Assembly (NCBI RefSeq): GCF_000143415.4
Contig: NW_003314501.1
Span: 1-12,828, forward strand
DNA from: Selaginella moellendorffii
Lineage: Eukaryota > Plantae > Lycopodiophyta
Length of the DNA stretch: 12,828 nt
Reading direction: 5' to 3'
Shown: positions 1-12,828 of the stretch, one piece after another
Layout: each line of letters begins with the position of its first letter
Numbering within the stretch: the first letter of the stretch is position 1
Translations under genes and position numbers: made by a program
Notes under the pieces: model-generated
The model's database searches: none
What the model was told of the DNA's origin: nothing
What the model saw: the letters and a program-made list of their open reading frames with translations, nothing else

Positions 1-21
1 GACGTGCGTTGCTAGCGTGCA

Positions 22-932
22 TTTGGCCCAAGAAAGGCCAATTTGGCCTAGGAAGGCCATACCCATACCCAGTGTTGGGTGATGAACTGACCACTGGGAA
101 GTCCAAGACTAGAGTGAATACGGACCGACAAGCGGGGTAGCTGGGTGAAGTGTTCAAGAGCCGGCTCTAGTTCCCCCGGGAGATCGACTGGCCGATACTC
201 CCAGTCCAAGGGTGGGTGGCACTATCTACTTGGATACCAGGCGTGGCTCAACGGAACCTCGCTCTAAGCCCATAGCTAGAGCACCCAAAGGCAGAAGGCA
301 GGGAGAGTACCCACGAGGCTTGCATAAGGCCACGGTGTTCCGAAGTGTTGTCCCAAAGACCCAGACTGTGGAAAGGAAGAGGAGTAGTCCTTTGGTGTAG
401 TGACCAAGGATACAGTCGTGGGGTGAGGAAGTCCCAGAGGACCATGGGACTTAGTGGTCGGGCCTGTGGGCCTTGATCCAGTGGCAGTGTCGGCGAACTC
501 AGCCAAGGACAGAAAGGGACTTGGTGGGGACCAGAAAGGAGATATTGGGGAAGGCTATTCCCCATGTCTGCGGGCATCCTAAGGATGCTAAGGGGTGGAT
601 TGGGGATGATCACTCATGGACGGATGGCCCAGTCCTTGAAAGATGGGACTGTGATGCAGGTGGTGTTAAACCACCGGTGTGACCAAGGTAAAGGGACATG
701 GCTTTAACGTAACGGGCTGATATGTCGGTGGTACCTTAGGGTGTCGGTCATGGGACCGGACACGTGGAGCACTTGGACCAAGTGCAATGGTTAAGTGGCA
801 TGGATGCCATTCTCGGGGCTAGCATGCCCCAAGTCCTAACTGGGATTTATGGAGGTTGTGAATGAGACTCCTCCAAGTGGTTGGTGGTGCGGTTAAGTGA
901 CTAAACTAAAATGGAAAAATTAGTCGCTTACA
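22..932 (+). mobile_element. Family A copy 1 (3' half), abutting the satellite of copy 2
   Basis: Colinear with about 8710-9614. Ends GTCGCTTACA at 932, followed by CCGAG. Confidence 0.88.
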
Positions 933-1184
933 CCGAGATGGAGTCCGAGATGGACCCGAGATGGAGTCCGAGATGGAATCCGAGATGGAGTCCGAGAAGG
1001 GCCCGAGATGGAGTCCGAAGTCAAGATTGAGACCGAGACCGGAAGCAAGACTGAGACTGAGACCGGGACCGAGACTGAGACCGGGACCGAGACCGAGACC
1101 AAGACCGAGACCGAGACCAAGACTGAGCCTAAGTCCGAGGCCGAGTCCCAATTCGAGTCCGAGTACGAATCTGAGTTTGAGTCG
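933..1184 (+). repeat. CCGAG-core minisatellite inside copy 2 (partial)
   Basis: The same 12/11-mer block followed by a more degenerate hexamer block. Confidence 0.92.
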
Positions 1185-2556
1185 AAGGGGGTGAAAGCCC
1201 AAAGCATCCGTCTCCCAGACCCTAGGGGGTTTGGTGAGCTCCAAAAGTATAGTAGGGGGAGGACTGCAGTGGAGCCAGTTTGGCCAAGAAAGGTTGGTTT
1301 GTCCCAGGAAGGCTGTACCCAGGTGTTGGGTGATAGGATAACCACTGGGAAGTCCAAAGCTAGAGTGAATACAGACTAACAAGTGGGGTAACTTGGTGAA
1401 GTGTTCAAGAGTAGGCTCTAGTTCCCCCGGGAGATCGAATGGTTGATGCTCCTAGTCCAAGTGTGGGTGGCACTACCTACTTGGATACCTGGCGTGGCTC
1501 AATAGAACCTCGCTCTAAGCCCATGGCTAGAGCATCCAAAAGCGGGAGGCAGGTGTAAGGGACTAAATTTTCCATTCTACTTTAGTCACTTAACTACACC
1601 TCTGACCACTTGGAGGAGTCTCATTCACAACCTCCATAAGTCCAATTCAGGACTTGGGACTTGCTAGCCCCAAGAATGGCATCCATGCCACTCGACATTT
1701 GCACTTCGTCCAAGTGCTCCACGTGTCCGATCCCAGGACCGACACTCAAAGGTACCACCGACATGGCAGCTTGTTACGCTAAAGCCATGCCCAATCACCT
1801 TTGCCACACTGGTAGTCCAATACCACTTGCATCACAGTCTTGGCTCTCCAAGACTAGGGAAACCATCCGTGAGTGGTCATCTCAGACCCACTCCTTAGCA
1901 TCCTTAGGATGCCCACCGACAAGGGGAATAGCCTTCCCCAATATCACTCTGTCAGTCCCCACTAAGTCCCTTTCTGCCCTTGGCCGTGTTTGCCAACACT
2001 GCCACTGGATCGAGGCCCACAGACCCGACCCCTATGTCCCACGGTCCTCTGGGACTTCCTCACCACACGACTGCGTCCTTGGTCACTGCCCCAGAGGACT
2101 GCTCCTTTTCCTTTCCACAGTCTGGGCCTTTGGGACAACATTTCGGAACACCGTGGCCTTACGCGAGCCACCTGGGTACTCTCCCCGCCTTTCGCCTTTA
2201 GGTGCTCTAGCCATGGGCTTAGAGCGAGGTTCCGTTGAGCCACGACAGGTATCCAAGTAGGTAGTGCCACCCACACTTGGACTGGGAGCATCGGCCAGTC
2301 GATCTCCCGAGGGAACTAGAGCCAGCTCTTGAACACTTCACCAAGCTACCCCGCTTGTCGGTCCGTATTCACTCTAGTCTTGGACTTCCCAATGGGCAAC
2401 TCATCACCCAACACTGGGTCCGGTCTTCCTGGGCCAAACTGGCCTTTCCTGGCCAAACTGGCTCCACTGCAGTCCTCCCCCCACTATACTTTTAGAGCTC
2501 ACCAAACCCCCCAGGGTCTGGGAGACGAACGCTTTGGGCTTTCACCCTCTGAGGCT

Positions 2557-3287
2557 CCGGACTCGGACTTGGACTCGGACTCGGACTCGGACTCGGACTC
2601 GGACTCGGACTCGGATTCGGACTCGGACTCGGGCTCGGGCTCGGTCTCGGTCTCGGTCCCGATCTCGGTCTCGGTCTCGGTCTCCATCTCGGACTCCATC
2701 TCGGACTCNNNNNNNNNNNNNNNNNNNNNNNNNNNNNNNNNNNNNNNNNNNNNNNNNNNNNNNNNNNNNNNNNNNNNNNNNNNNNNNNNNNNNNNNNNNN
2801 NNNNNNNNNNNNNNNNNNNNNNNNNNNNNNNNNNNNNNNNNNNNNNNNNNNNNNNNNNNNNNNNNNNNNNNNNNNNNNNNNNNNNNNNNNNNNNNNNNNN
2901 NNNNNNNNNNNNNNNNNNNNNNNNNNNNNNNNNNNNNNNNNNNNNNNNNNNNNNNNNNNNNNNNNNNNNNNNNNNNNNNNNNNNNNNNNNNNNNNNNNNN
3001 NNNNNNNNNNNNNNNNNNNNNNNNNNNNNNNNNNNNNNNNNNNNNNNNNNNNNNNNNNNNNNNNNNNNNNNNNNNNNNNNNNNNNNNNNNNNNNNNNNNN
3101 NNNNNNNNNNNNNNCATCTCGGGTCCATCTCGGACTCCACTTCGGACTCCACTCGGGTCCATCTCGGGTCCACCTCGGACTCCATCTCGGACTCCATCTC
3201 GGACTCCATCTCGGGTCCATCTCGGACTCCATCTCGGGTCCATCTCGGACTCCACTTCGGACTCCAACTCGGGTCCATCTCAGACAC
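2557..3287 (-). repeat. CCGAG-core minisatellite inside copy 3, spanning the assembly gap
   Basis: (GGACTC)n and (GGTCTC)n, then CCATCTCGGACT / CCATCTCGGGT units on both sides of the Ns. Confidence 0.92.
2709..3114. other. Assembly gap (406 N)
   Basis: Run of n inside the satellite of copy 3. Confidence 1.
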
Positions 3288-4151
3288 TTCCACGTGTCAT
3301 GTGTTGGTCCTTTTGGGTCCCTTTTTGGAGCCTCGCCTATGGCTCGCTTCGTGCTCATTCCTCGAGCACTTCGTTGGGAGTTCCACTCCCGCTCTTGACT
3401 TTTCAAGTCAGAGCTTTTGGTCCATACGTGTTATGCTCGTTTGGCTCTCGCTTTGGCCACTACCACGTGGCGCCCTTTCCGGCTCCACTTTGGGGCCTAG
3501 GGATTTTGTGTCTCATAGCAGGGAGAGTACCTATGAGGCTCACGTAGGGCCACGGTGTTCCAAAATGTTGTCCCAAAGGCCCAGACTGTGGAAAGGAAAA
3601 AATGCAGTCCTTTGGTGTAGTGACCAAGGATATAGTTGTATGGCAAAGAAGTCCTAAAGGAATGTGGGTCTTAATGGTCGGGCCTATGGGCCTCTATCCA
3701 GTGGCAATGTTGGCGAACAGGGCCATGGGTAGAAAGGAACTTATTGGGGATCAGAAAAGGGATATTGGGAAAGGCTATTCCCCATGCCTGTAGGCTTTAA
3801 GGATGCTAAGAAGTGGATCTAGGATGATCACTCGTGGATGAATGGCATAGTCTTTGAGAGATAGGACTATGATGTAGGTGGTGTTAGACCACCGGTGTGA
3901 CCAAGGTGAATGGGCATGGCGTTAGCGTAGTAGGCTGATATGTTGGTGGTACCTTGGGGTGTCGGTCATGGGATCAAACACATGGAGCACTTGGACCATG
4001 TGCAATGGTTGAGTGGTATGGATGACATTCTTGGGGCTAGCAAGTCCCTAAGTCCAAAATAGGACTTACGGAGGTTGTGAGTGAGACTCCTCCAAATGGT
4101 CAAAGGTGTGGTTAAGTGACTAAAGTAGAATGGAAAATTTAGTCACTTACA

Positions 4152-4197
4152 GTGTGGTTAAGTGACTAAAATAGAATGGAAAATTTAGTTAGTTACA
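4152..4197 (+). repeat. Second copy of the terminal 46 bp of family A
   Basis: Direct repeat of 4106-4151 with 3 mismatches, ending TTACA. Confidence 0.9.
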
Positions 4198-4508
4198 TTT
4201 GAAAGGTAACAGAAAACACACTATCTAGGAAATACACCGACTTAAATGAGTTATAAAATGACCTCTCCTCTATATCTAAAGGTGTTAAGACTTAAACACC
4301 CTTTAACTGTCACCAACAAAGAAATGACTAATGGAGTTTTCCACCTTTGCTACTTTGAGTACCACTCAGCTTACAAAAGAATGATACATCCCGGCCCGCA
4401 AGGATATAGGGAGAGAGCTAGAGGCTCAACTTTCCTTGAGCAAAAAATCAACCTTATCAGGAAGATTTATACAAATATTATAAATTAGTAGATGAAATTG
4501 TTTATACA
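4198..4508 (-). repeat. Probable 5' part of the chromovirus 3' LTR, interrupted by the family A stack
   Basis: Starts TGTA right after the PPT-like tract, and the 5' LTR ends TACA. No matching 5' LTR segment is inside the window to confirm it. Confidence 0.45.
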
Positions 4509-4523
4509 ACCACGCCCCTTTTC
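4509..4523 (-). promoter_or_regulatory. Probable polypurine tract of the chromovirus
   Basis: Minus strand GAAAAGGGGCGTGGT immediately before TGTATAAAC, about 210 bp after the chromodomain stop. Confidence 0.5.
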
Positions 4524-4735
4524 AATAATGAGTCAACGAGAGAGGGGTGGGGACTTGTGATCAGTCTATAAGGGTTATCCCCATAGTTATGGATTGAACC
4601 CATGCACTAAAATGCAAAAACTAGACTGCCAAAACTGACCCAAATACTAACGAATGAGAGAAACAAAACTTTGATTTATAGAAATATATTATTTTTATTG
4701 ATTTGCAAAATTTTTTATTAGATTTATAAAAGTTA

Positions 4736-4960
4736 CTATTTATTACGATTCTCATACTCTGTGACAAGCTCACGAGCATATGTAAGATTTCTAAGAGGTT
4801 CCCAAGTTGATTCACAAGTCGGATAACCTTTCCATTTAACTAGATATTCTTTGGAATGACCACCATGAGCCTTGTGGGAGAAGAGAATCGCCTCGACCTC
4901 ATACTTAAGATCACCATTTACAATTTTCGGAGGGGGGCAAATGTCTATAGAGCGATCCAC
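4736..4960 (-). pseudogene. Integrase C-terminal chromodomain
   Basis: PPPKIVNGDLKYEVEAIL...EYLVKWKGYPTCESTWEPLRNL. Classical chromodomain motifs with the aromatic Y/W/Y positions retained. Confidence 0.92.
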
Positions 4961-5945
4961 AACAACACAATATAGGATATATCACCAACTCGCTTTAATA
5001 CCCAATGGGGCCCGATATATCTTGGCAACAGTTTTTGAGACAAAGATCCCTTAATATTCAAAATCTGGGAAAGATAACCATACCTGATCTCCCACTTGAT
5101 AGGATACATCCCGACAATACTAATCCTTATCATGTAGATACCAATCATGAGCTTTGCCCATCGCCTCAGTAGCACTAGACCAACCTTGGCATAGTTGCTC
5201 CGCATGACTCTTAACAGCTAGGACCAACATTTTGGACATTGGTTTCGGTACAACAATCTATTAAGAAACCCCATAAGCATTCCCTTGCAGCATCTCCCAA
5301 GGAGAACAGCTAATAGTGCTATGAAATGTATTGTTATAACAGATTTCTATTGTGTCCAAATGCTCAACTTAGTCACAGTTATCTACTGCGATATAGTACC
5401 ACAGATAATCCTTAATTTGAGTATTCACATATTCAGTTTGCCCATCAGTTTGAGGATGATAAGCTATACTAAACTTCAACTTGGTACTAAATAACTAGAA
5501 CAATGTGCCCCAAAACTCCCCATAAATCTTGAATCTCTATCCGAGGTCATCTCTTTAGGAAGGCCATGAACCTGCACTACTTCATGGAAAAAGAGCTTTG
5601 CTGGTTACTTCACATTCATTGTTTCCACAGTTGGAATGAAATGTGCAATCTTCGACAACTAATCCACAACCATCATCAAAGTATCATAACCATTAGACTT
5701 CGGCAAGCAAGTGACGAAGTCAAGTGTCACACTCTTAAATAGCCATGCCAGTATTGGAATGCACTACAACTTCCTAGCTTGCTTCTCAGTTCTACAATTA
5801 CATTGCTAGCATATAGGGCAAAAATGGGCATAATGAGTTACATTACCTTCCATACCAGACCAGAAATATCCCTTTTTCAATGAAGTAAGAGTCTTTCGTT
5901 TTCCACCATATCCCACTGCTGAAACATCATGATGTTCCCATAGAA
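4961..5945 (-). pseudogene. pol: Integrase (decayed HHCC, DDE core, GPY/F), disrupted
   Basis: HDVSAVGYG...YFWSGM...CPIC, VTLDFVTCLP (D at 5721-5719), [37 protein letters not shown]. Confidence 0.93.
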
Positions 5946-6129
5946 ACAACTGCTGTAGATCTTTAGAGCGAAGATATAATTTTTCTTGCTTATATAAATT
6001 AAACCCATCTCAAATTGAGAAGTTAAGCTTTGCAGTGGTACGATAGACAACTTTTGCCACTTCGCTACCAGGATTCTACTTTGACAACTCCATATGGAGC
6101 AAGATTGCATTTGCCAATGGATCACTTAA

Positions 6130-6579
6130 ATACGAAGCCCAAAAATCCTCCAAACAGTCCAAAATGATTGCCGATATTGCCCGGAATTGAGCTTAATGAC
6201 TCAACGCATCCGAAACAATATTGTCTCTTGCCAACAAGCTTGCTTCGGCATAAGTAGCAAAGTAACTTAGTATGTTGCTATCCATATAAACCATGGTATG
6301 TCCACACAAATAGTGTCTCTAGTGTTCCAACATCCATAGTATAGCAAACATCTCTTTCTTGTGTGTTGGCCATCTTCGTTGGGTTTCATATTCTTTGAGT
6401 AGAACACAATGGGACAACCGTGCCGCTTTAGCATAACACCAACTACTTTGTCACAATCTTGCTGCAACAAGGCACCAATAGCATAGCTAGATGCATCACA
6501 ATGCACTTCGAAGGGTTTATCAAAATTTGGGATCCTAAGAACAGGAACCATAGTCAAGATCTCCTTCAACTATACAAAA
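6130..6579 (-). pseudogene. pol: RNase H domain, disrupted; lower limit approximate
   Basis: PVLRIPNFDKPFEVHCDASSYAIGALLQQ...PIVFYSK, then after a frameshift RWPTHKKEMFAI...RHYL. Confidence 0.9.
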
Positions 6580-6741
6580 TGTAGCGCATGTGATCATGGG
6601 ATGAGATTTGGATATACTATTACCGTGGATCCTTGGAACCTTAGGGGATAAATGGGGATAAAATAGCCACTAAGGGCTCTCTCATCAAGCAATTGCCCCT
6701 TTTCCAGTTGGCTTAAGGGGAGAGAAATAAGGTGCGCTACA
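6580..6741 (+). repeat. TRIM 5' LTR (162 bp)
   Basis: 9-bp terminal inverted repeat TGTAGCGCA...TGCGCTACA. About 9 substitutions and 1 indel versus the 3' LTR by manual count. Confidence 0.95.
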
Positions 6742-6743
6742 GT

Positions 6744-6755
6744 TGGTATCGGAGC
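6744..6755 (+). promoter_or_regulatory. TRIM PBS, tRNA-iMet type
   Basis: TGGTATCGGAGC matches TGGTATCAGAGC at 11/12, 2 nt after the LTR's terminal CA. Confidence 0.9.
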
Positions 6756-7075
6756 AAATGGCACGGGTTCGATTCCCATTGATTAGTGGCTACCTAAAAT
6801 ATAATATACCCTTGAGCAAGGTATATTTCTACCTCTAAATTAGAAAAATCGTACGTATTGGGCATCCATGCGTATGTCCTTCCTCTTGTAGAGCATCCCA
6901 GACGAAGGTATCCACCGTGGGACTGCGGTACGGGTGGATGACTAGTTGCCTCACATGGAATAGCTGGTCTATACAATGGAAGGATTGGTAGATTCAGTGT
7001 GGAAATGGAAGTGCTGGTTCCCTTTGGCTCAGTAGGGGTTGTTAGTCAATAGTCAATGAGGACATTGACATCTCT

Positions 7076-7089
7076 GAAGGGGGGGTGAA
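7076..7089 (+). promoter_or_regulatory. TRIM polypurine tract
   Basis: GAAGGGGGGGTGAA directly before the 3' LTR. Confidence 0.88.
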
Positions 7090-7250
7090 AGTAGCGCATG
7101 TGATCATGGGATGAGATTTGGATATACTGTCACCGTGGATCCTTGGAACCTTGGGGGATAAATAGGATAAAATAGCCACTAAGGGCTCTCTCATCAAGCA
7201 ATTGCCCCTTTTTCAATTGGCTTAAAGGGAGAGAGATAAGGTGCGCTACA
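7090..7250 (+). repeat. TRIM 3' LTR (161 bp, first base T>A)
   Basis: AGTAGCGCATG...GGTGCGCTACA, a direct repeat of 6580-6741. Confidence 0.95.
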
Positions 7251-7310
7251 CAAAAGCACACTAACAAGCTGGTGTCTAATGAAACACTATACTACTCTTT
7301 GTTAACTCAA
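7251..7310 (-). pseudogene. pol: RT-RNase H connection fragment stranded between two insertions
   Basis: Reads ELTKSSIVFH*TPAC*CAF. It continues ...PLTE from 9888 and leads into V*LKEILTMVPVL below 6580. Confidence 0.85.
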
Positions 7311-7452
7311 GTATCCAAGTAGGTAGTGCCACCCACACTTGGATTGGGAGCATCGGCTCAAGCTGGTGTCTAATGAAACACTATACTACTCTTTGTTAAC
7401 TCAAGTATCCAAGTAGGTAGTGCCACCCACACTTGGATTGGGGGCATCGGCT
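7265..7452. repeat. 94-bp tandem duplication
   Basis: 7265-7358 and 7359-7452 differ at one position. Confidence 0.95.
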
Positions 7453-7454
7453 CA

Positions 7455-7728
7455 GTCTCGGGCTTGATCTCGGACTCGATCTCGGATCCGACTTTGGATT
7501 CGGTCTCAGACTTGATCTCGGACCCGATCTCGGACTCAACTTCAGACTCGACTTCGGACTCGGTCTCGGACCCGATTCTCGAATCTCGGACTCGGTCTCG
7601 AACTCAGTCTCCGAGTCAGTCTTGGACTCGATCTCAGACTCAGTCCCATCCGATAAACTCTTTGTCATTTTGGTCATGTTTTCGGGGATCCTTTAGCCTA
7701 CGACACCTCGGGGAGTTGGTTCCTTACA
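7455..7728 (-). mobile_element. Fragment of a different TG-starting element with a degenerate CCGAG-type array (putative family B LTR end)
   Basis: Minus strand begins TGTAAGGAACCAACTCCCC at 7728. About 80 bp is absent from family A, followed by GAGTCCGAGATC-like units. The other end is missing. Confidence 0.5.
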
Positions 7729-7802
7729 CTTGGGTCCATCTTGGACTCCATCTCGGGTCCATCTCGAACTCTATCTCGGGTCCATCTCGGACTCCCTCTC
7801 GG

Positions 7803-9614
7803 TGTGAGACACAAATTCCTAAGCCCCAAAGTGGAGCCGAAAGGGTGCCACGTGGTAGTGGCCGAAGCAAAAGCCAAACGAGCGTAACACGTTTGGACTA
7901 AAAAGGCTTCAACTTGAAAAGTTGAGAGCAGGAGAGGAACTCCCAACGGAGTGCTCAAGGAACGAGCATGAGGCAAGCAATAAGCGAGGCTCCAAAAAGG
8001 GACCCAAAAGGACCAACACATGACACGTGGTAGTGTCCGAGATGGAGTCCGAGATGGACCCGAGTTGGAGTCCGAAGTGGAGTCCGAGATGAACCCGAGT
8101 TGGAGTCCGAGATGGAGTCCGAGATGGACCCGAGTTGGAGTCCGAAGTGGAGTCCGAGATGGACACGAGTTGGAGTCCGAGGTAGAGTCCGAGATGGACC
8201 CGAGATGGACCCGAGATGGAGTCCGAGATGGACCCGAGATGGACCCAAGATGGAGTCCGAGGTGGAGTCCGAGATGGACCCGAGATGGAGTCCGAGATGG
8301 ACCCCAGATGGAGTCCGAGATGGACCCGAGATGGACCCGAGATGGAGTCTGAGGTGGAGTCCAAGATGGACCCGAGATGGAGTCCAAGATGGAGTCCGAG
8401 ATGGACCCAAGATGGAGTCCGAGATGGAACCAAGACCGAGACCGAGTCCGAGTCCGAAACCGGGACCGAGACCAAGTCCGAGTCCGAGACCGAGACCAAG
8501 ACCGAGTCCGAGTCCGAAACCGGGACCGAGACCAAGTCCGAGTCCAAGTTCGAGCCCGAGTCCGAGTCTGAATACTAATACAGGCAGTTGGGTGAAAGCC
8601 CAAAGTGACCGTCCCCCAGGGGGGGGGGGGTGCGGGGGGTTCCAAAAGTATAGTAGGGAGAGTGTGGGGGTTGGAGCCCAGTGGAGCCAGTTTGACCAGG
8701 AAAGGCTAGTTTGGCCTAGGAAAGGCCAATTTGGCCCAGGAAGACCATACCCAGTGTTGGGTGATGAACTGACCACTGGGAAGTCCAAGACTAGAGTGAA
8801 TACGGACCGACAAGCGGGGTAGCTGGGTGAAGTGTTCAAGAGCCGGCTCTAGTTCCCCCGGGAGATCGACTGGCCGATACTCCCAGTCCAAGGGTGGGTG
8901 GCACTATCTACTTGGATACCAGGCGTGGCTCAACGGAACCTCGCTCTAAGCCCATAGCTAGAGCACCCAAAGGCGGAAGGCAGGGAGAGTACCCACGAGG
9001 CTTGCATAAGGCCACGGTGTTCCGAAGTGTTGTCCCAAAGACCCAGACTGTGGAAAGGAAGAGGAGTAGTCCTTTGGTGTAGTGACCAAGGATACAGTCG
9101 TGGGGTGAGGAAGTCCCAGAGGACCATGGGACTTAGTGGTCGGGCCTGTGGGCCTTGATCCAGTGGCAGTGTCGGCGAACTCAGCCAAGGACAGAAAGGG
9201 ACTTGGTGGGGACCAGAAAGGAGATATTGAGGAAGGCTATTCCCCATGTCTGCGGGCATCCTAAGGATGCTAAGGGGTGGATTGGGGATGATCACTCATA
9301 GATAGATGGCCCAGTCTTGGAGAGACGGGATTGCAATGTAGGTGGTGTTGGACCACTGATGTGACCAAGGTGATTGGGCATGGCCTAGCGTAATGGGCTG
9401 GCATGTTGGTGGTGCCTTGGGGTGTCGGTCATGGGACCGGACACGTGGAGCACTTGGACCAAGTGCAAAGGTTGAGTGGCATGGATGCCTTTTTCGGGGC
9501 TAGCAAGCCCCAAGTCCTGAGTGGGACTTATGAAGGTTGTGAATGAGACTCCTCCAAGTGGTCGGATATGCGGTTAAGTGACTAAAGTAGAATGGAAAAA
9601 ATTAGTCACTTACA
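7803..9614 (+). mobile_element. Family A copy 4: full-length 1812-bp TG...CA unit, probable solo LTR
   Basis: Begins TGTGAGACAC and ends GTCACTTACA. Perfect 5-bp TSD CTCGG at 7798-7802 and 9615-9619. No adjacent PBS, PPT or coding region. Confidence 0.9.
8036..8570 (+). repeat. Bipartite CCGAG-core minisatellite inside copy 4
   Basis: Mixed CCGAGATGGAGT (12-mer) and CCGAGATGGAC (11-mer) units to about 8429, then CCGAGA/CCGAGT hexamers. Confidence 0.95.
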
Positions 9615-9887
9615 CTCGGGTCCATCTCAGGTCCTTCTCGGGTCCATCTCGGACTCCTGCCATGTGTCATGTGTTGGTTCTCTTTTGTCCCTTTTCTAGA
9701 GACTCACTTTTTGCTTGCTTCATGCTTATTCCTTGAGCACTTTGTTGGGAATTCCACTCCCGCTCTCGACTTTTCAAGTCGAAGCTTTCAGTCCAAACGT
9801 ATTACACTTGTTTGGTTTTCGCTTCAGCCACTACCACATGGCACCCTTCCGGCTCCACTTTGGGGCCTAGGGATTTTGTGTCTCACA

Positions 9888-10752
9888 CTCAGTCAATGGA
9901 AGAGAAATTCTTGCAAAATTATGGACAAACTTGCGATAGTATCCCGCCAAACTAAGAAAGGAACGAATATCTGATACAATGATTGGGACTTCCCAGGACT
10001 TCACCGCTTCCACCTTCTTTGGATCCACCTCAATTACGCCACCAACAACTATATGTCCAAGAAAGTTCATATTGCATTTACTTTCTTTAGCATATAATTT
10101 GTGTTCACACAACTTCTAAAACATCAGCACCAAGTGTTTCAAATGATCCTCCAACATTTCACTGAAGACTAGAACACTGTTGATATAAAGGACAACAAAT
10201 GTGTCCAAATATTGTCTGAATATTCTATCTATTATTGTGCTAAATGTTGCTAGAGCATTACATAACCGAAATAGCATGACAAGGAACTAATAAGATCCGT
10301 ACCGAGTCTTAAAGACTGTTTTCTCCACATCTTGATCTACCACCTATATCTGATGATACCCAGACTGCAAATCAAGCCGCATAAAATATTAAGCCTTTAA
10401 GTGGTGGTCAAACAAGTCATCAATGCAAGACAAAGGATAACTATTTTTGACTGTGATCTTGTTTGAGAGCCCTATAATTGATACACATTCTCATAGTTCC
10501 ATCCTTTTTCATAACAAAAACAACTAGAGCTCCATAAGATGACTTGCTTGGTCAGATATGACCTTTATCAAGAAGCTCCATGAGTTGCTTATTGAGTTTA
10601 GCCATCTCTTTGATGTTCAAATGATATGGAGCTTGCATAGGTGGTTTAAAACCCAGAAAAACCATAATATAATAATCAACCTCACGGCTAGAAGGTAGTC
10701 CCGATGGCAAATCCTTCGGACAAATATCCTGATTCAGCACCAACAACTCCAA
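9888..10752 (-). pseudogene. pol: Reverse transcriptase domain, disrupted
   Basis: LPSGLPSSREVDY...APY, YPLSCIDDLFD, LDLQSGYHQI, KTVFKTRYGSY, catalytic YIDD decayed to YINS (10187-10176), FLGHIV...DPKKVEAVKSW...RSFLSLAGYYRKFVHNFARISLPLTE. Cut at 9888 by family A copy 5. Confidence 0.95.
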
Positions 10753-10959
10753 TATCTTCTTTTGTACATGATCAACTGCATCACTGATTCAAACTAAGTC
10801 AGTAACACCTTCAGCTTCCATCAATTGAACCCAAAAGGTCTAACATCCTCTCTTATCTACTTTTTGAGTGGCTCTTGCAATCAGGAACTTAGCATCTTAA
10901 TCCTTTAAGGAATGCTTTTGCAACTAGAAGGACATATTAGAATGTCCTTCTGACCTCAA

Positions 10960-11290
10960 TGTGATGCAACTTTGTTTAGAACCATAGATCCCTTTAATAT
11001 ATTTTTTAAAGAAATCCATACCAAATACCATATAAAAATCTGGTATCTTCAATGCTACCAAGTCCACTCTTTCTTTCCACTTGGATATTTTTATTAGAAC
11101 ATCAATTACAAAATTTTTTGCCTACATGCCCACTTTTCGCAAACCAGAAATGTATAGGTGACATCTACTCAGCAATTAATCCTAACAACTTAACTAAGTT
11201 TTTGGATATCATGGAGTGTGTAGCTCCTGTATCAATCATCACTCGGACTTAATGTCCATGGACCAGACTTACCAGATACATCAATAGATT
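10960..11290 (-). pseudogene. pol: Aspartic protease domain, disrupted
   Basis: VRVMIDTGATHSMIS with DTGA at 11233-11222. DFYMVFGMDF at 11040-11011 corresponds to the ILGxDxL motif. Same frame as the zinc knuckle apart from one TAA. Confidence 0.88.
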
Positions 11291-11452
11291 AATATTTGCA
11301 TTGACTATGAGAAAAACTTGAGGAAAGTAACAAAAGTAGCTCACCTCCTCTTCCTCATAGTTTGCATTGATCAACTTGTCAACCTCTTTAGCTTCACCAC
11401 CAATATCTTCCCTCGTGACATTAATACGAAACCTTGTCTTATGTTTGTTGGG

Positions 11453-12560
11453 ACATTCCAAGGACCTATGTCCTATCTCTCCACAATCGAAGCAATGACC
11501 CCCACTACCTGTTCCACTAGGAGCAGGTTTCTCAAGTTGCTGCTACTTGTGCCCATTAGGAGGAGGAATAGAGTGCCTAGGATCAGAAGAAGCTGCTGGT
11601 GGTTGCCAACCACCAACTTTGTTAACCATTGTTTGTGAGCTTCCAAAGTGGAACTTTCCTTCCACCATCTATTTTCAATCATCTTATTTATTCCTAGAAT
11701 TCTTATTCTTGTCCAAGCTACCAGCATATGGCTGCTGATATTATTCCATGAGTGAGTGACTACAGGCAACTTGTTGTGCTGCCTCCTTACACTCTAGGTA
11801 TGTCTTCGGCTTAAACTTCAAAATTTTATTGTGACAAAGTGAACTTAATCTTTCTAGAAAATAACTTTGAGCATCTTCATGATTCACATTTGCAATCATA
11901 ATGCACTTCTGAGCAAACACATTAACATAATGCATAAGGTCCCCTTGTTACTTTAACTACCGCAGCTCCATGTGAAGTCTTAGACAAAGATCATTTGGCA
12001 AGTATTTCTTATGGATACGAGACTGCATCTTGGTCCAGCTTCTAGTCTGCCTTTTTTCAGCACACACTTGATGCCACCAAGTTTTGGTATGATCGGTAAG
12101 AAAGGATTGTGTGCATACAACTTTCCTATAATCATCTATGTTTGCCACTATAAAATAATTTTCCATATTGTAGACCCAATCTTCCAAAACTTGATAGTCC
12201 CGTATGCCTCTAAAATTGGGAGGTTTTGGAGGTTTGAACTTTGAAACTTGTGTAGCCATGGGTAGTTGCAAAACTTTATCATCCTCAGAACTTGAAAAGA
12301 GGTCTAGTTGCTTAGGTTTAGCTAGTTTGGCTGCCTTAACTTTTTTTTTCCACTTTTTGTTCTCCTTTTTCAATTTGTGAACTTCCTTTTGCAGATTCTT
12401 GATCTCAACTTCCTTAGCTGTTTGCTGTAGTGCCACAGCATTTGGCTCTTCCTCTTCTGACACAGCCTCAGCTTCTTTCACAGCATTTCTAGTAGGAGTT
12501 TCCTCCTCTCAATTTGCTTATCTAGAGGTTTTAGCATAATTAGCACGGTTCCTTTTCACA
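11453..12560 (-). pseudogene. gag: Gag (capsid-like region plus CCHC zinc knuckle), disrupted; 5' limit approximate
   Basis: ORF 12481-11957 contains FKPPKPPNFRG...LEDWVYNMENYF...KTWW, typical of retrotransposon gag. Continuation at 11935-11741. CX2CX4HX4C knuckle CFDCGEIGHRSLEC at 11494-11453. Confidence 0.9.
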
Positions 12561-12772
12561 ATCCCACTAGTGAATGGTGTAATCCAACTAATTCTACACA
12601 AATTGCTTCAGATCTACTAGAAAAATCTCTACATATGCAACTTGAGTCAGAAAATCTGACAAAAGTTGGATAGGAATTGCTGAGACAATTCCTTTGATAC
12701 AAAATATAGCACACCTAAATTTGGAGTCAAACTCCAAGTCTGTTGCGCTACAAAACAAGGGTTTAATATAAT

Positions 12773-12784
12773 CCTCTAATACCA
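12773..12784 (-). promoter_or_regulatory. Primer-binding site, tRNA-iMet type (decayed)
   Basis: Minus strand TGGTATTAGAGG matches the canonical TGGTATCAGAGC at 10/12. It lies 2 nt after a CA and upstream of gag. Confidence 0.7.
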
Positions 12785-12786
12785 AA

Positions 12787-12828
12787 TGTAGCACACTTGA
12801 ATTTAGAGCCAAACTCCAAACCCATTGC
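12787..12828 (-). repeat. 3' end (U5) of the chromovirus 5' LTR
   Basis: Minus strand reads ...AAGTGTGCTACA, then a 2-nt spacer (TT), then the PBS-like sequence. The LTR continues beyond the window. Confidence 0.65.

Follow-up and report, generated by a model that had tools for sequence, protein, structure and literature searches.

The 12,828 nucleotides of Selaginella moellendorffii DNA analysed here (positions 1 to 12,828, forward strand, of contig NW_003314501.1, assembly GCF_000143415.4; hereafter "the window") hold a nest of retrotransposons, in which five units of about 1.8 kb, all of one family, lie within one another and within an older retrotransposon, a degraded chromovirus. The family carries a minisatellite, a tandem array of 11/12-bp repeats with the core CCGAG (CTCGG on the other strand), and three insertion junctions in the window fall within blocks of these repeats, exactly on the core and in one phase of the repeat unit. 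Three junctions at the same spot hint at a bias in integration, though with so very few of them no case can be made for a system by which the family targets itself. The map of the nest, the termini of its units, their target-site duplications (TSDs) and the common phase of the junctions are established here.

A family of nested long terminal repeats

Copy 4 as it stands was the reference for blastn mapping, the pieces of interrupted copies being compared apart, and the consensus units from a tandem-repeat tool were used for period and core only. All copies are homologous to copy 4 and collinear with it, and they share a layout of a 5' region of about 230 bp, a block of 11/12-bp repeats with the CCGAG core (the 12-mer block), a block of hexamers that also contain CCGAG, and a body of about 1 kb; in copy 4 these correspond to 7803–8034, 8035–8428, 8429–8568 and the remainder to the 3' end, and the length of the array varies among copies. 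Nesting within the family is seen, with copies 1 and 3 inside copy 2 and copy 4 inside copy 5. Copy 1 is 93.8% identical overall to positions 908–1812 of copy 4, the first piece of copy 2 is 77% identical to positions 535–1182, and the right piece of copy 5 (9621–9887 by blastn) is 84.4% identical to positions 1–267. The GC content of the family is 48–59%, as against 33–46% (mostly 34–43%) in the chromovirus.

Wherever an end is present in copies 1–5, it reads TGTGAG at the 5' side and CTTACA at the 3' side, giving TG..CA ends and a 6-bp imperfect terminal inverted repeat. The 5' end motif is exact at 7803 (+) and 9887 (-), and the 3' end motif is exact at 4142–4151 and 9605–9614, with one mismatch at 923–932 (+) and 1554–1563 (-). 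Perfect 5-bp TSDs flank copies 3 and 4. Because TG..CA ends and 5-bp TSDs are the signature of insertions made by the integrase of long terminal repeat (LTR) retrotransposons, we infer from the termini and TSDs that the units, which an earlier note on this DNA had treated as satellite-carrying elements, are more aptly called solo or truncated LTRs of a full element of one LTR-retrotransposon family. The 5' third of the LTR, where the minisatellite sits, is probably U3, ahead of a conserved TATA-like motif. We rejected the possibility that the family LTR is the chromovirus's own, since it differs from the chromovirus in its ends and in GC content, and the chromovirus ends in the window have nothing in common with each other.

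The coding region of the family is absent from the window, and downstream of the copy 2 3' end come a 46-bp duplicate and then chromovirus DNA, with no primer-binding site (PBS) there. Protein word searches with an open frame of the LTR, a gag piece and an RNase H piece found nothing, so that the open frames of the LTR have no relatives by this search, and exact look-up of the open frame in the array returned no record. A 23-base stretch of the array (933–955) had no match in genome or viral collections. A 17-base stretch near the 5' end, common to three copies, occurred at 55 loci in metagenome contigs, none of them homologous by blastn and hence chance matches, and literal array strings retrieved from papers only chance matches to primers.

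Two structural details of these copies should be recorded. A 46-bp tandem duplication (4106–4197; duplicate 4152–4197) takes in the 3' terminus of copy 2, so that two TTACA-type ends follow one another, and a run of 406 N (2709–3114) lies in the array of copy 3, between its hexamer and 12-mer blocks, where it may conceal further array or an insertion.

Insertion junctions and target sites

The three array junctions are denoted J1 (copy 1 in copy 2, 932/933), J2 (copy 4 in copy 5) and J3 (7728/7729). J2 carries every mark of a true insertion: copy 4 lies inside the 12-mer block of copy 5 with perfect CTCGG duplicates at 7798–7802 and 9615–9619, and the array flanks, compared apart, break off and resume at the identical phase of the unit. 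At J1, the CCGAG of the copy 2 array follows directly on the end of copy 1, and the presumed TSD is seen on one side only because the upstream side of copy 1 lies off the window. At J3, a CTTACA end adjoins CTTGG, a CpG-decayed form of the core, and both phase and strand relation match the right side of J2. The downstream context of J2 is common to J1, and its upstream context to J3. Could these be fewer than three events? J1 and J2 are not one junction assembled or duplicated twice, as the LTR end joins opposite strands of the array in the two cases, which makes them independent, and J2 and J3 are not one junction either, as the sequence before J3 fits copy 4 in its last six bases only.

Outside the arrays, copy 3 is bounded by perfect GCAGG duplicates (1549–1553 and 3518–3522), and the 5' end of copy 5 abuts CTCAG in the chromovirus pol. 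The nest begins on its left with CTCAA, which matches that CTCAG in four of five bases, so that a single integration event seems to have founded the nest; CTCAA is probably the second TSD copy of this founding insertion into pol. Taken together, the five family flanks (at 933, 1549, 4198, 7798 and 9888) comprise two exact cores, one pentamer a single mismatch away and two unrelated ones. The earlier note had placed copy 4 in the satellite of copy 5 with TSD CTCGG, copy 1 at a CCGAG in that of copy 2, all three junctions in the 11/12-mer block in one phase, copy 5 beside a pol pentamer one mismatch from CTCGG, and copy 3 at the unrelated GCAGG; each of these placements is upheld here, that of copy 1 by the context of its junction.

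Table 1. Features of the 12,828-bp window, in order of position.
Feature	Positions	Strand	Description
Copy 1	1–932	+	3' part of LTR, left portion off the window edge; ends ..CTTACA at 932; blastn 22–932
J1	933–937	+	CCGAG core of copy 2 array right after the end of copy 1; presumed TSD, this side only
Copy 2, first piece	933–1553	+	12-mer array 933–1018, hexamer-type block 1019–1176, body up to copy 3
Copy 3	1554–3517	-	Whole LTR unit inside copy 2 body; TSD GCAGG
Copy 2, second piece	3518–4197	+	Body to 3' end at 4151, then 46-bp tandem duplicate; flank TTTGA
Host chromovirus	4198–12828	-	Ty3/gypsy gag-pol with chromodomain, degraded, AT-rich; runs off right window edge
Chromodomain	4739–4960	-	Pfam, E = 2.4e-15
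Integrase SH3	4948–5205	-	Pfam
Integrase zinc domain	5809–5949	-	Pfam
RNase H	6270–6569	-	Pfam
TRIM-like miniature LTR element	6580–7250	+	671 bp, inside chromovirus pol; not of the LTR family; TSD CAAAA
Nest left flank	7308–7312		CTCAA; 4/5 match to CTCAG 9888–9892, flanks compared apart
Family-like remnant	7313–7641	-	LTR-body scrap (twice), then diverged hexamer-type array 7456–7641
Orphan segment	7642–7728		87 bp between hexamer-type and 12-mer arrays; ends ..CTTACA (J3)
Copy 5, left piece	7729–7802	-	12-mer array; first bases decayed core CTTGG, last CTCGG 7798–7802
Copy 4	7803–9614	+	Complete LTR unit, 1812 bp
Copy 5, right piece	9615–9887	-	CTCGG 9615–9619, remaining 12-mer array to 9652, LTR 5' region ending 9887
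Copy 5 5'-end flank	9888–9892		CTCAG in chromovirus pol, between RT and RNase H domains
RT (weak match)	10119–10277	-	Pfam
gag	11960–12481	-	Pfam

The third LTR-type end

The element that ends at J3 is harder to place. When the 87 bp before 7728 were compared on both strands with every copy and with the rest of the window, nothing matched significantly, nor was there any match from terminus to terminus, and only one z-score in these comparisons exceeded 2.1; the segment was therefore rejected as a diverged family end or as part of another element of the window, and assignment of the third element to the LTR family is not possible. CTTACA occurs eight times in the window, four of these being family termini, with three background occurrences in 12.4 kb, and since the motif is thus rare and sits exactly at the array discontinuity, 7728 is likely to be a true LTR-type end of a third element. 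The third element that the earlier note saw ending at CTTGG thus probably has a real LTR-type end there, its CTTACA adjoining a decayed core in phase.

The neighbouring DNA is family-like. The segment 7405–7457 is 88.7% identical to positions 1066–1117 of copy 4 (minus strand, blastn), and the order of parts in 7313–7728 is collinear with an LTR on the minus strand. This stretch would be either the inner part of copy 5, reduced by two internal deletions and holding a foreign 87-bp remnant, or a third, variant LTR that ends at 7728. The place where chromovirus pol meets the scrap of LTR body is covered by a 94-bp tandem duplication (7265–7454, 98% identity); it accounts for the doubling of that scrap and must be younger than the deletion behind the junction.

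Divergence among the copies

Identity to copy 4 is 77–85% for the hosts, copies 2 and 5, and 75–95%, depending on the segment, for copy 3. The copies inserted at the exact core, 1 and 4, agree at 539 of 541 bases (99.6%) over copy-4 positions 950–1490, after which, over the final 320 bp, identity drops sharply to values of 78% and 91% (22–932 compared with 8710–9614). This mosaic would reflect either gene conversion or a recombinant copy, or else a chimeric assembly. The order of nesting fits the divergence, by which copies 1 and 4 appear as the two youngest.

Frequency of the core and chance of a shared phase

All chance figures that follow are nominal and post hoc, the pattern having been defined from the same few junctions. 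Sites reading CCGAG or CTCGG number 108 in the window, divided into 51 in the 12-mer blocks (763 bp), 51 in the hexamer blocks (635 bp) and six elsewhere, and the core, exact or CpG-decayed, occupies 8.1% of 12-mer-block positions. Given one array junction, a further one falls in phase with p = 0.081 and two further ones with p = 0.0065. The 12-mer block makes up 21.7% of copy 4, which gives a probability of 0.12 for at least two hits in it among three internal to the LTR, and of 0.034 for at least three among four; array hits thus do not significantly exceed what the proportion of the LTR taken up by the array would give (p = 0.12, or 0.034 when the third junction is counted). The hexamer blocks of the window, with the same number of cores, have received no junction, and so the pentamer alone cannot be the determinant.

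Among the chromovirus pentamers, the class within one mismatch of the core, to which the CTCAG beside copy 5 belongs, makes up 1.3%. When given the same orientation, the five family flanks all fit the pattern N-Y-R-R-R. So do 14.7% of the pentamers in the window and 25.8% of the positions in the arrays, where the fitting positions are dominated by three or four pentamers, of which CCGAG is the commonest. Among the core variants in the arrays (933–1176, 2558–3285, 7456–7802 and 8035–8568), CCAAG and CTGAG, with their complements, predominate, a CpG-deamination pattern that suggests that the arrays are methylated; the most decayed cores are those of the older arrays (7456–7641).

The host chromovirus and a miniature element

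The chromovirus was annotated by Pfam scans of single open pieces. Its domains follow, on the minus strand, the Ty3/gypsy pol order, with the chromodomain at the integrase's C-terminal end. It is broken by the LTR nest and by a small element resembling a terminal-repeat retrotransposon in miniature (TRIM), and numerous stops and frameshifts disrupt it as well, so that no stretch stays open for more than 174 codons. Near its upstream end, a 57-nt repeat occurs twice at 82-bp spacing with 79% identity (12690–12828), each copy with a PBS-like motif on the minus strand, and the primer-binding region of the chromovirus thus seems to be duplicated.

The TRIM-like element has the short LTRs, the total length below 1 kb, the 5-bp TSD and the PBS-like site typical of its class. 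Its terminal direct repeats of about 162 bp (6580–6741 and 7090–7250) are 94–95% identical, and a PBS-like site of methionine-tRNA type after the left repeat and a purine-rich tract before the right one can be read from the sequence. No open frame of its own was found; the open reading frames of at least 60 aa in its span all lie on the opposite strand and were left unscanned. Rfam and tRNA scans of the window, this element included, gave no match.

Origin of the nest and of the shared phase

On balance, we incline to the reading that the window records ordinary nesting of LTRs of one family, together with a modest sequence bias of its integrase that the low-complexity array funnels into a single phase. 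The old, AT-rich chromovirus on the minus strand would have been hit first by GC-rich copies of the LTR retrotransposon, of which LTRs alone persist in the window, and later copies of the same family would have integrated into earlier ones, each insertion being an ordinary integrase event with intact TG..CA ends and a 5-bp duplication. The integrase would have a modest bias for local sequence or DNA shape, with which the three of five flanks at most one mismatch from CCGAG/CTCGG are consistent. The array offers only about a dozen distinct pentamers, and therefore even a weak, generic bias, such as has been documented for plant LTR retrotransposons (PMC6911290), would put nearly every array hit in one phase, without any recognition of the array. 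In-phase junctions and self-nesting would then be by-products of a weak bias amplified by the array and of an abundant family being its own commonest neighbour, rather than the work of a dedicated targeting device. That such a bias exists, and that its effect is a by-product, is what we infer from the junctions at hand.

Several points weigh against this reading. The flanks of copy 3 (GCAGG) and copy 2 (TTTGA) are far from the CCGAG core; both copies of the TSD are visible at only one array junction, as the earlier note, which also warned of a tiny sample, had rightly conceded; the element at J3, judged by its sequence, is not assignable to the LTR family; and the N-Y-R-R-R pattern is our own post hoc reading of five flanks. 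Neither an internal region nor a PBS or polypurine tract of the family is found within the window. Moreover, published surveys find that nested insertions usually avoid LTRs (PMC6911290), and three LTR-internal hits may therefore point beyond a mere by-product.

Coincidence helped by ascertainment is a rather unlikely alternative, under which insertions into this repeat-rich DNA were effectively random, and only hindsight, in a window where this family abounds, picked out the common phase and the pol flank close to the core. There are only two or three array junctions, of which the two secure ones give nominal probabilities of 0.08 for the phase and 0.12 for the share of the array; copies 2 and 3 sit on unrelated pentamers, and the 51 cores of the hexamer blocks attracted nothing. 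Set against this are the phase match of 0.0065 reached once the third junction is counted, a CTTACA that is unlikely to stand at the J3 boundary by chance given its three background occurrences in 12.4 kb, and the membership of the CTCAG flank in a pentamer class of only 1.3%.

A true self-targeting system strikes us as improbable. The integration machinery would in that case recognise the 11/12-mer array in a fixed phase, through its sequence, a bound protein or its chromatin, and nests would grow by positive feedback. All three array junctions do lie in the 12-mer rather than the hexamer block and in one phase, J2 does have a downstream context in common with J1 and an upstream one with J3, and the two youngest copies, 1 and 4, are both in the array, hits made more notable by the under-use of LTRs as nesting targets (PMC6911290). 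However, the junctions are very few, three of the copies (2, 3 and 5) went in elsewhere, the array is only weakly enriched in hits relative to the part of the LTR that it occupies, the window holds no integrase or tethering domain of the family, and a simple bias accounts for the same data. The reading in the earlier note thus survives in part: same-family insertions are nested and copies 1 and 4 sit on the core, but a landing pad that directs insertions is unproven with so few junctions and two of five flanks unrelated. Least probable of all is that the assembler created some of the junctions by chimeric joining within repeats, as the N run in the copy 3 array, the abrupt drop after the 541-bp stretch of 99.6% identity between copies 1 and 4, of a kind that collapsed or wrongly threaded repeats produce, and the three tandem duplications at element borders might suggest, given that the ends of copy 4 are intact, its 5-bp duplication is perfect and its array flanks resume in register, that J1 and J2 lie on opposite array strands and so are not one junction seen twice, and that gene conversion or recombinant copies explain the mosaic equally well.

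What would self-targeting mean, if true? Each insertion would plant fresh preferred sites, and a self-propagating landing pad would steer new copies into old ones and spare host genes. A preference for a phase of its own array, if it held genome-wide, would make this family a clean natural case of an LTR retrotransposon that carries its own safe harbour, with a bearing on how nests build up without gene damage in large plant genomes and on how arrays borne by elements become satellites. For now, what the window presents is an ordinary nest and a regularity that is no more than suggestive, and its main value lies in the precise and cheap hypothesis that it supplies for a genome-wide census of termini.

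Comparison with known systems

Nesting of plant LTR retrotransposons in copies of their own family ("autoinsertion") and a non-random, weakly palindromic choice of TSDs have been described (Jedlicka et al., 2019, PMC6911290), and the nest reported here resembles those cases in its 5-bp TSDs and in a putatively non-random choice of target. That survey found mainly 3' untranslated regions (UTRs) to be hit, with LTRs under-used and a weak palindromic TSD motif (PMC6911290), whereas the insertions here are LTR-internal and two or three of them fall on one array pentamer. Simple repeats have also been proposed as targets or "landing pads" of transposable elements (TEs) (Kejnovsky et al., 2013, PMC3547029; reviewed in PMC12477314), and the likeness to the present case lies in the idea that insertions are drawn to short tandem repeats, perhaps by the shape of the DNA or by its open chromatin. 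The repeats in question are microsatellites of 1–6 bp near many types of TE, identified by co-localisation (PMC3547029; PMC12477314), whereas here an 11/12-bp minisatellite is carried by the inserting family itself and the junctions are resolved to the base.

Tandem arrays within LTR retrotransposons are common, and those of Retand and Ogre are well known as seeds of satellites (PMC12477314). As portrayed in that review, they share with the present family a variable array that is integral to the element and spreads with it (Macas, 2009; Vondrak, 2020; via PMC12477314). What sets their arrays apart, in the same account, is a location that is for the most part the 3' UTR or the interval between LTRs, and their discussion as satellite seeds. 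Site preference as a source of TE-in-TE structures is exemplified by tandem dimers at external hot spots in Drosophila (McGurk and Barbash, 2018, PMC5932611), where it likewise brings repeated landing at the same place, though the preferred site there is not an array inside the element.

The window also recalls the site-specific retroelements that reside in other repeats, such as R1 and R2 in ribosomal DNA, Tx1L in Tx1D, TRAS and SART in telomeric repeats, and the clusters of DIRS-1, in which the target is itself repeated and copies pile up in one kind of locus. These are mostly non-LTR or tyrosine-recombinase elements with dedicated endonucleases, and their specificity has been established from hundreds of copies, whereas the specificity here is putative and its mechanism would be that of an LTR-type integrase. 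We know of no array described as an integration target in Retand, Ogre and similar elements. A family whose own array also served as its target, in one phase, putative as that is here, would be a new twist on known ideas.

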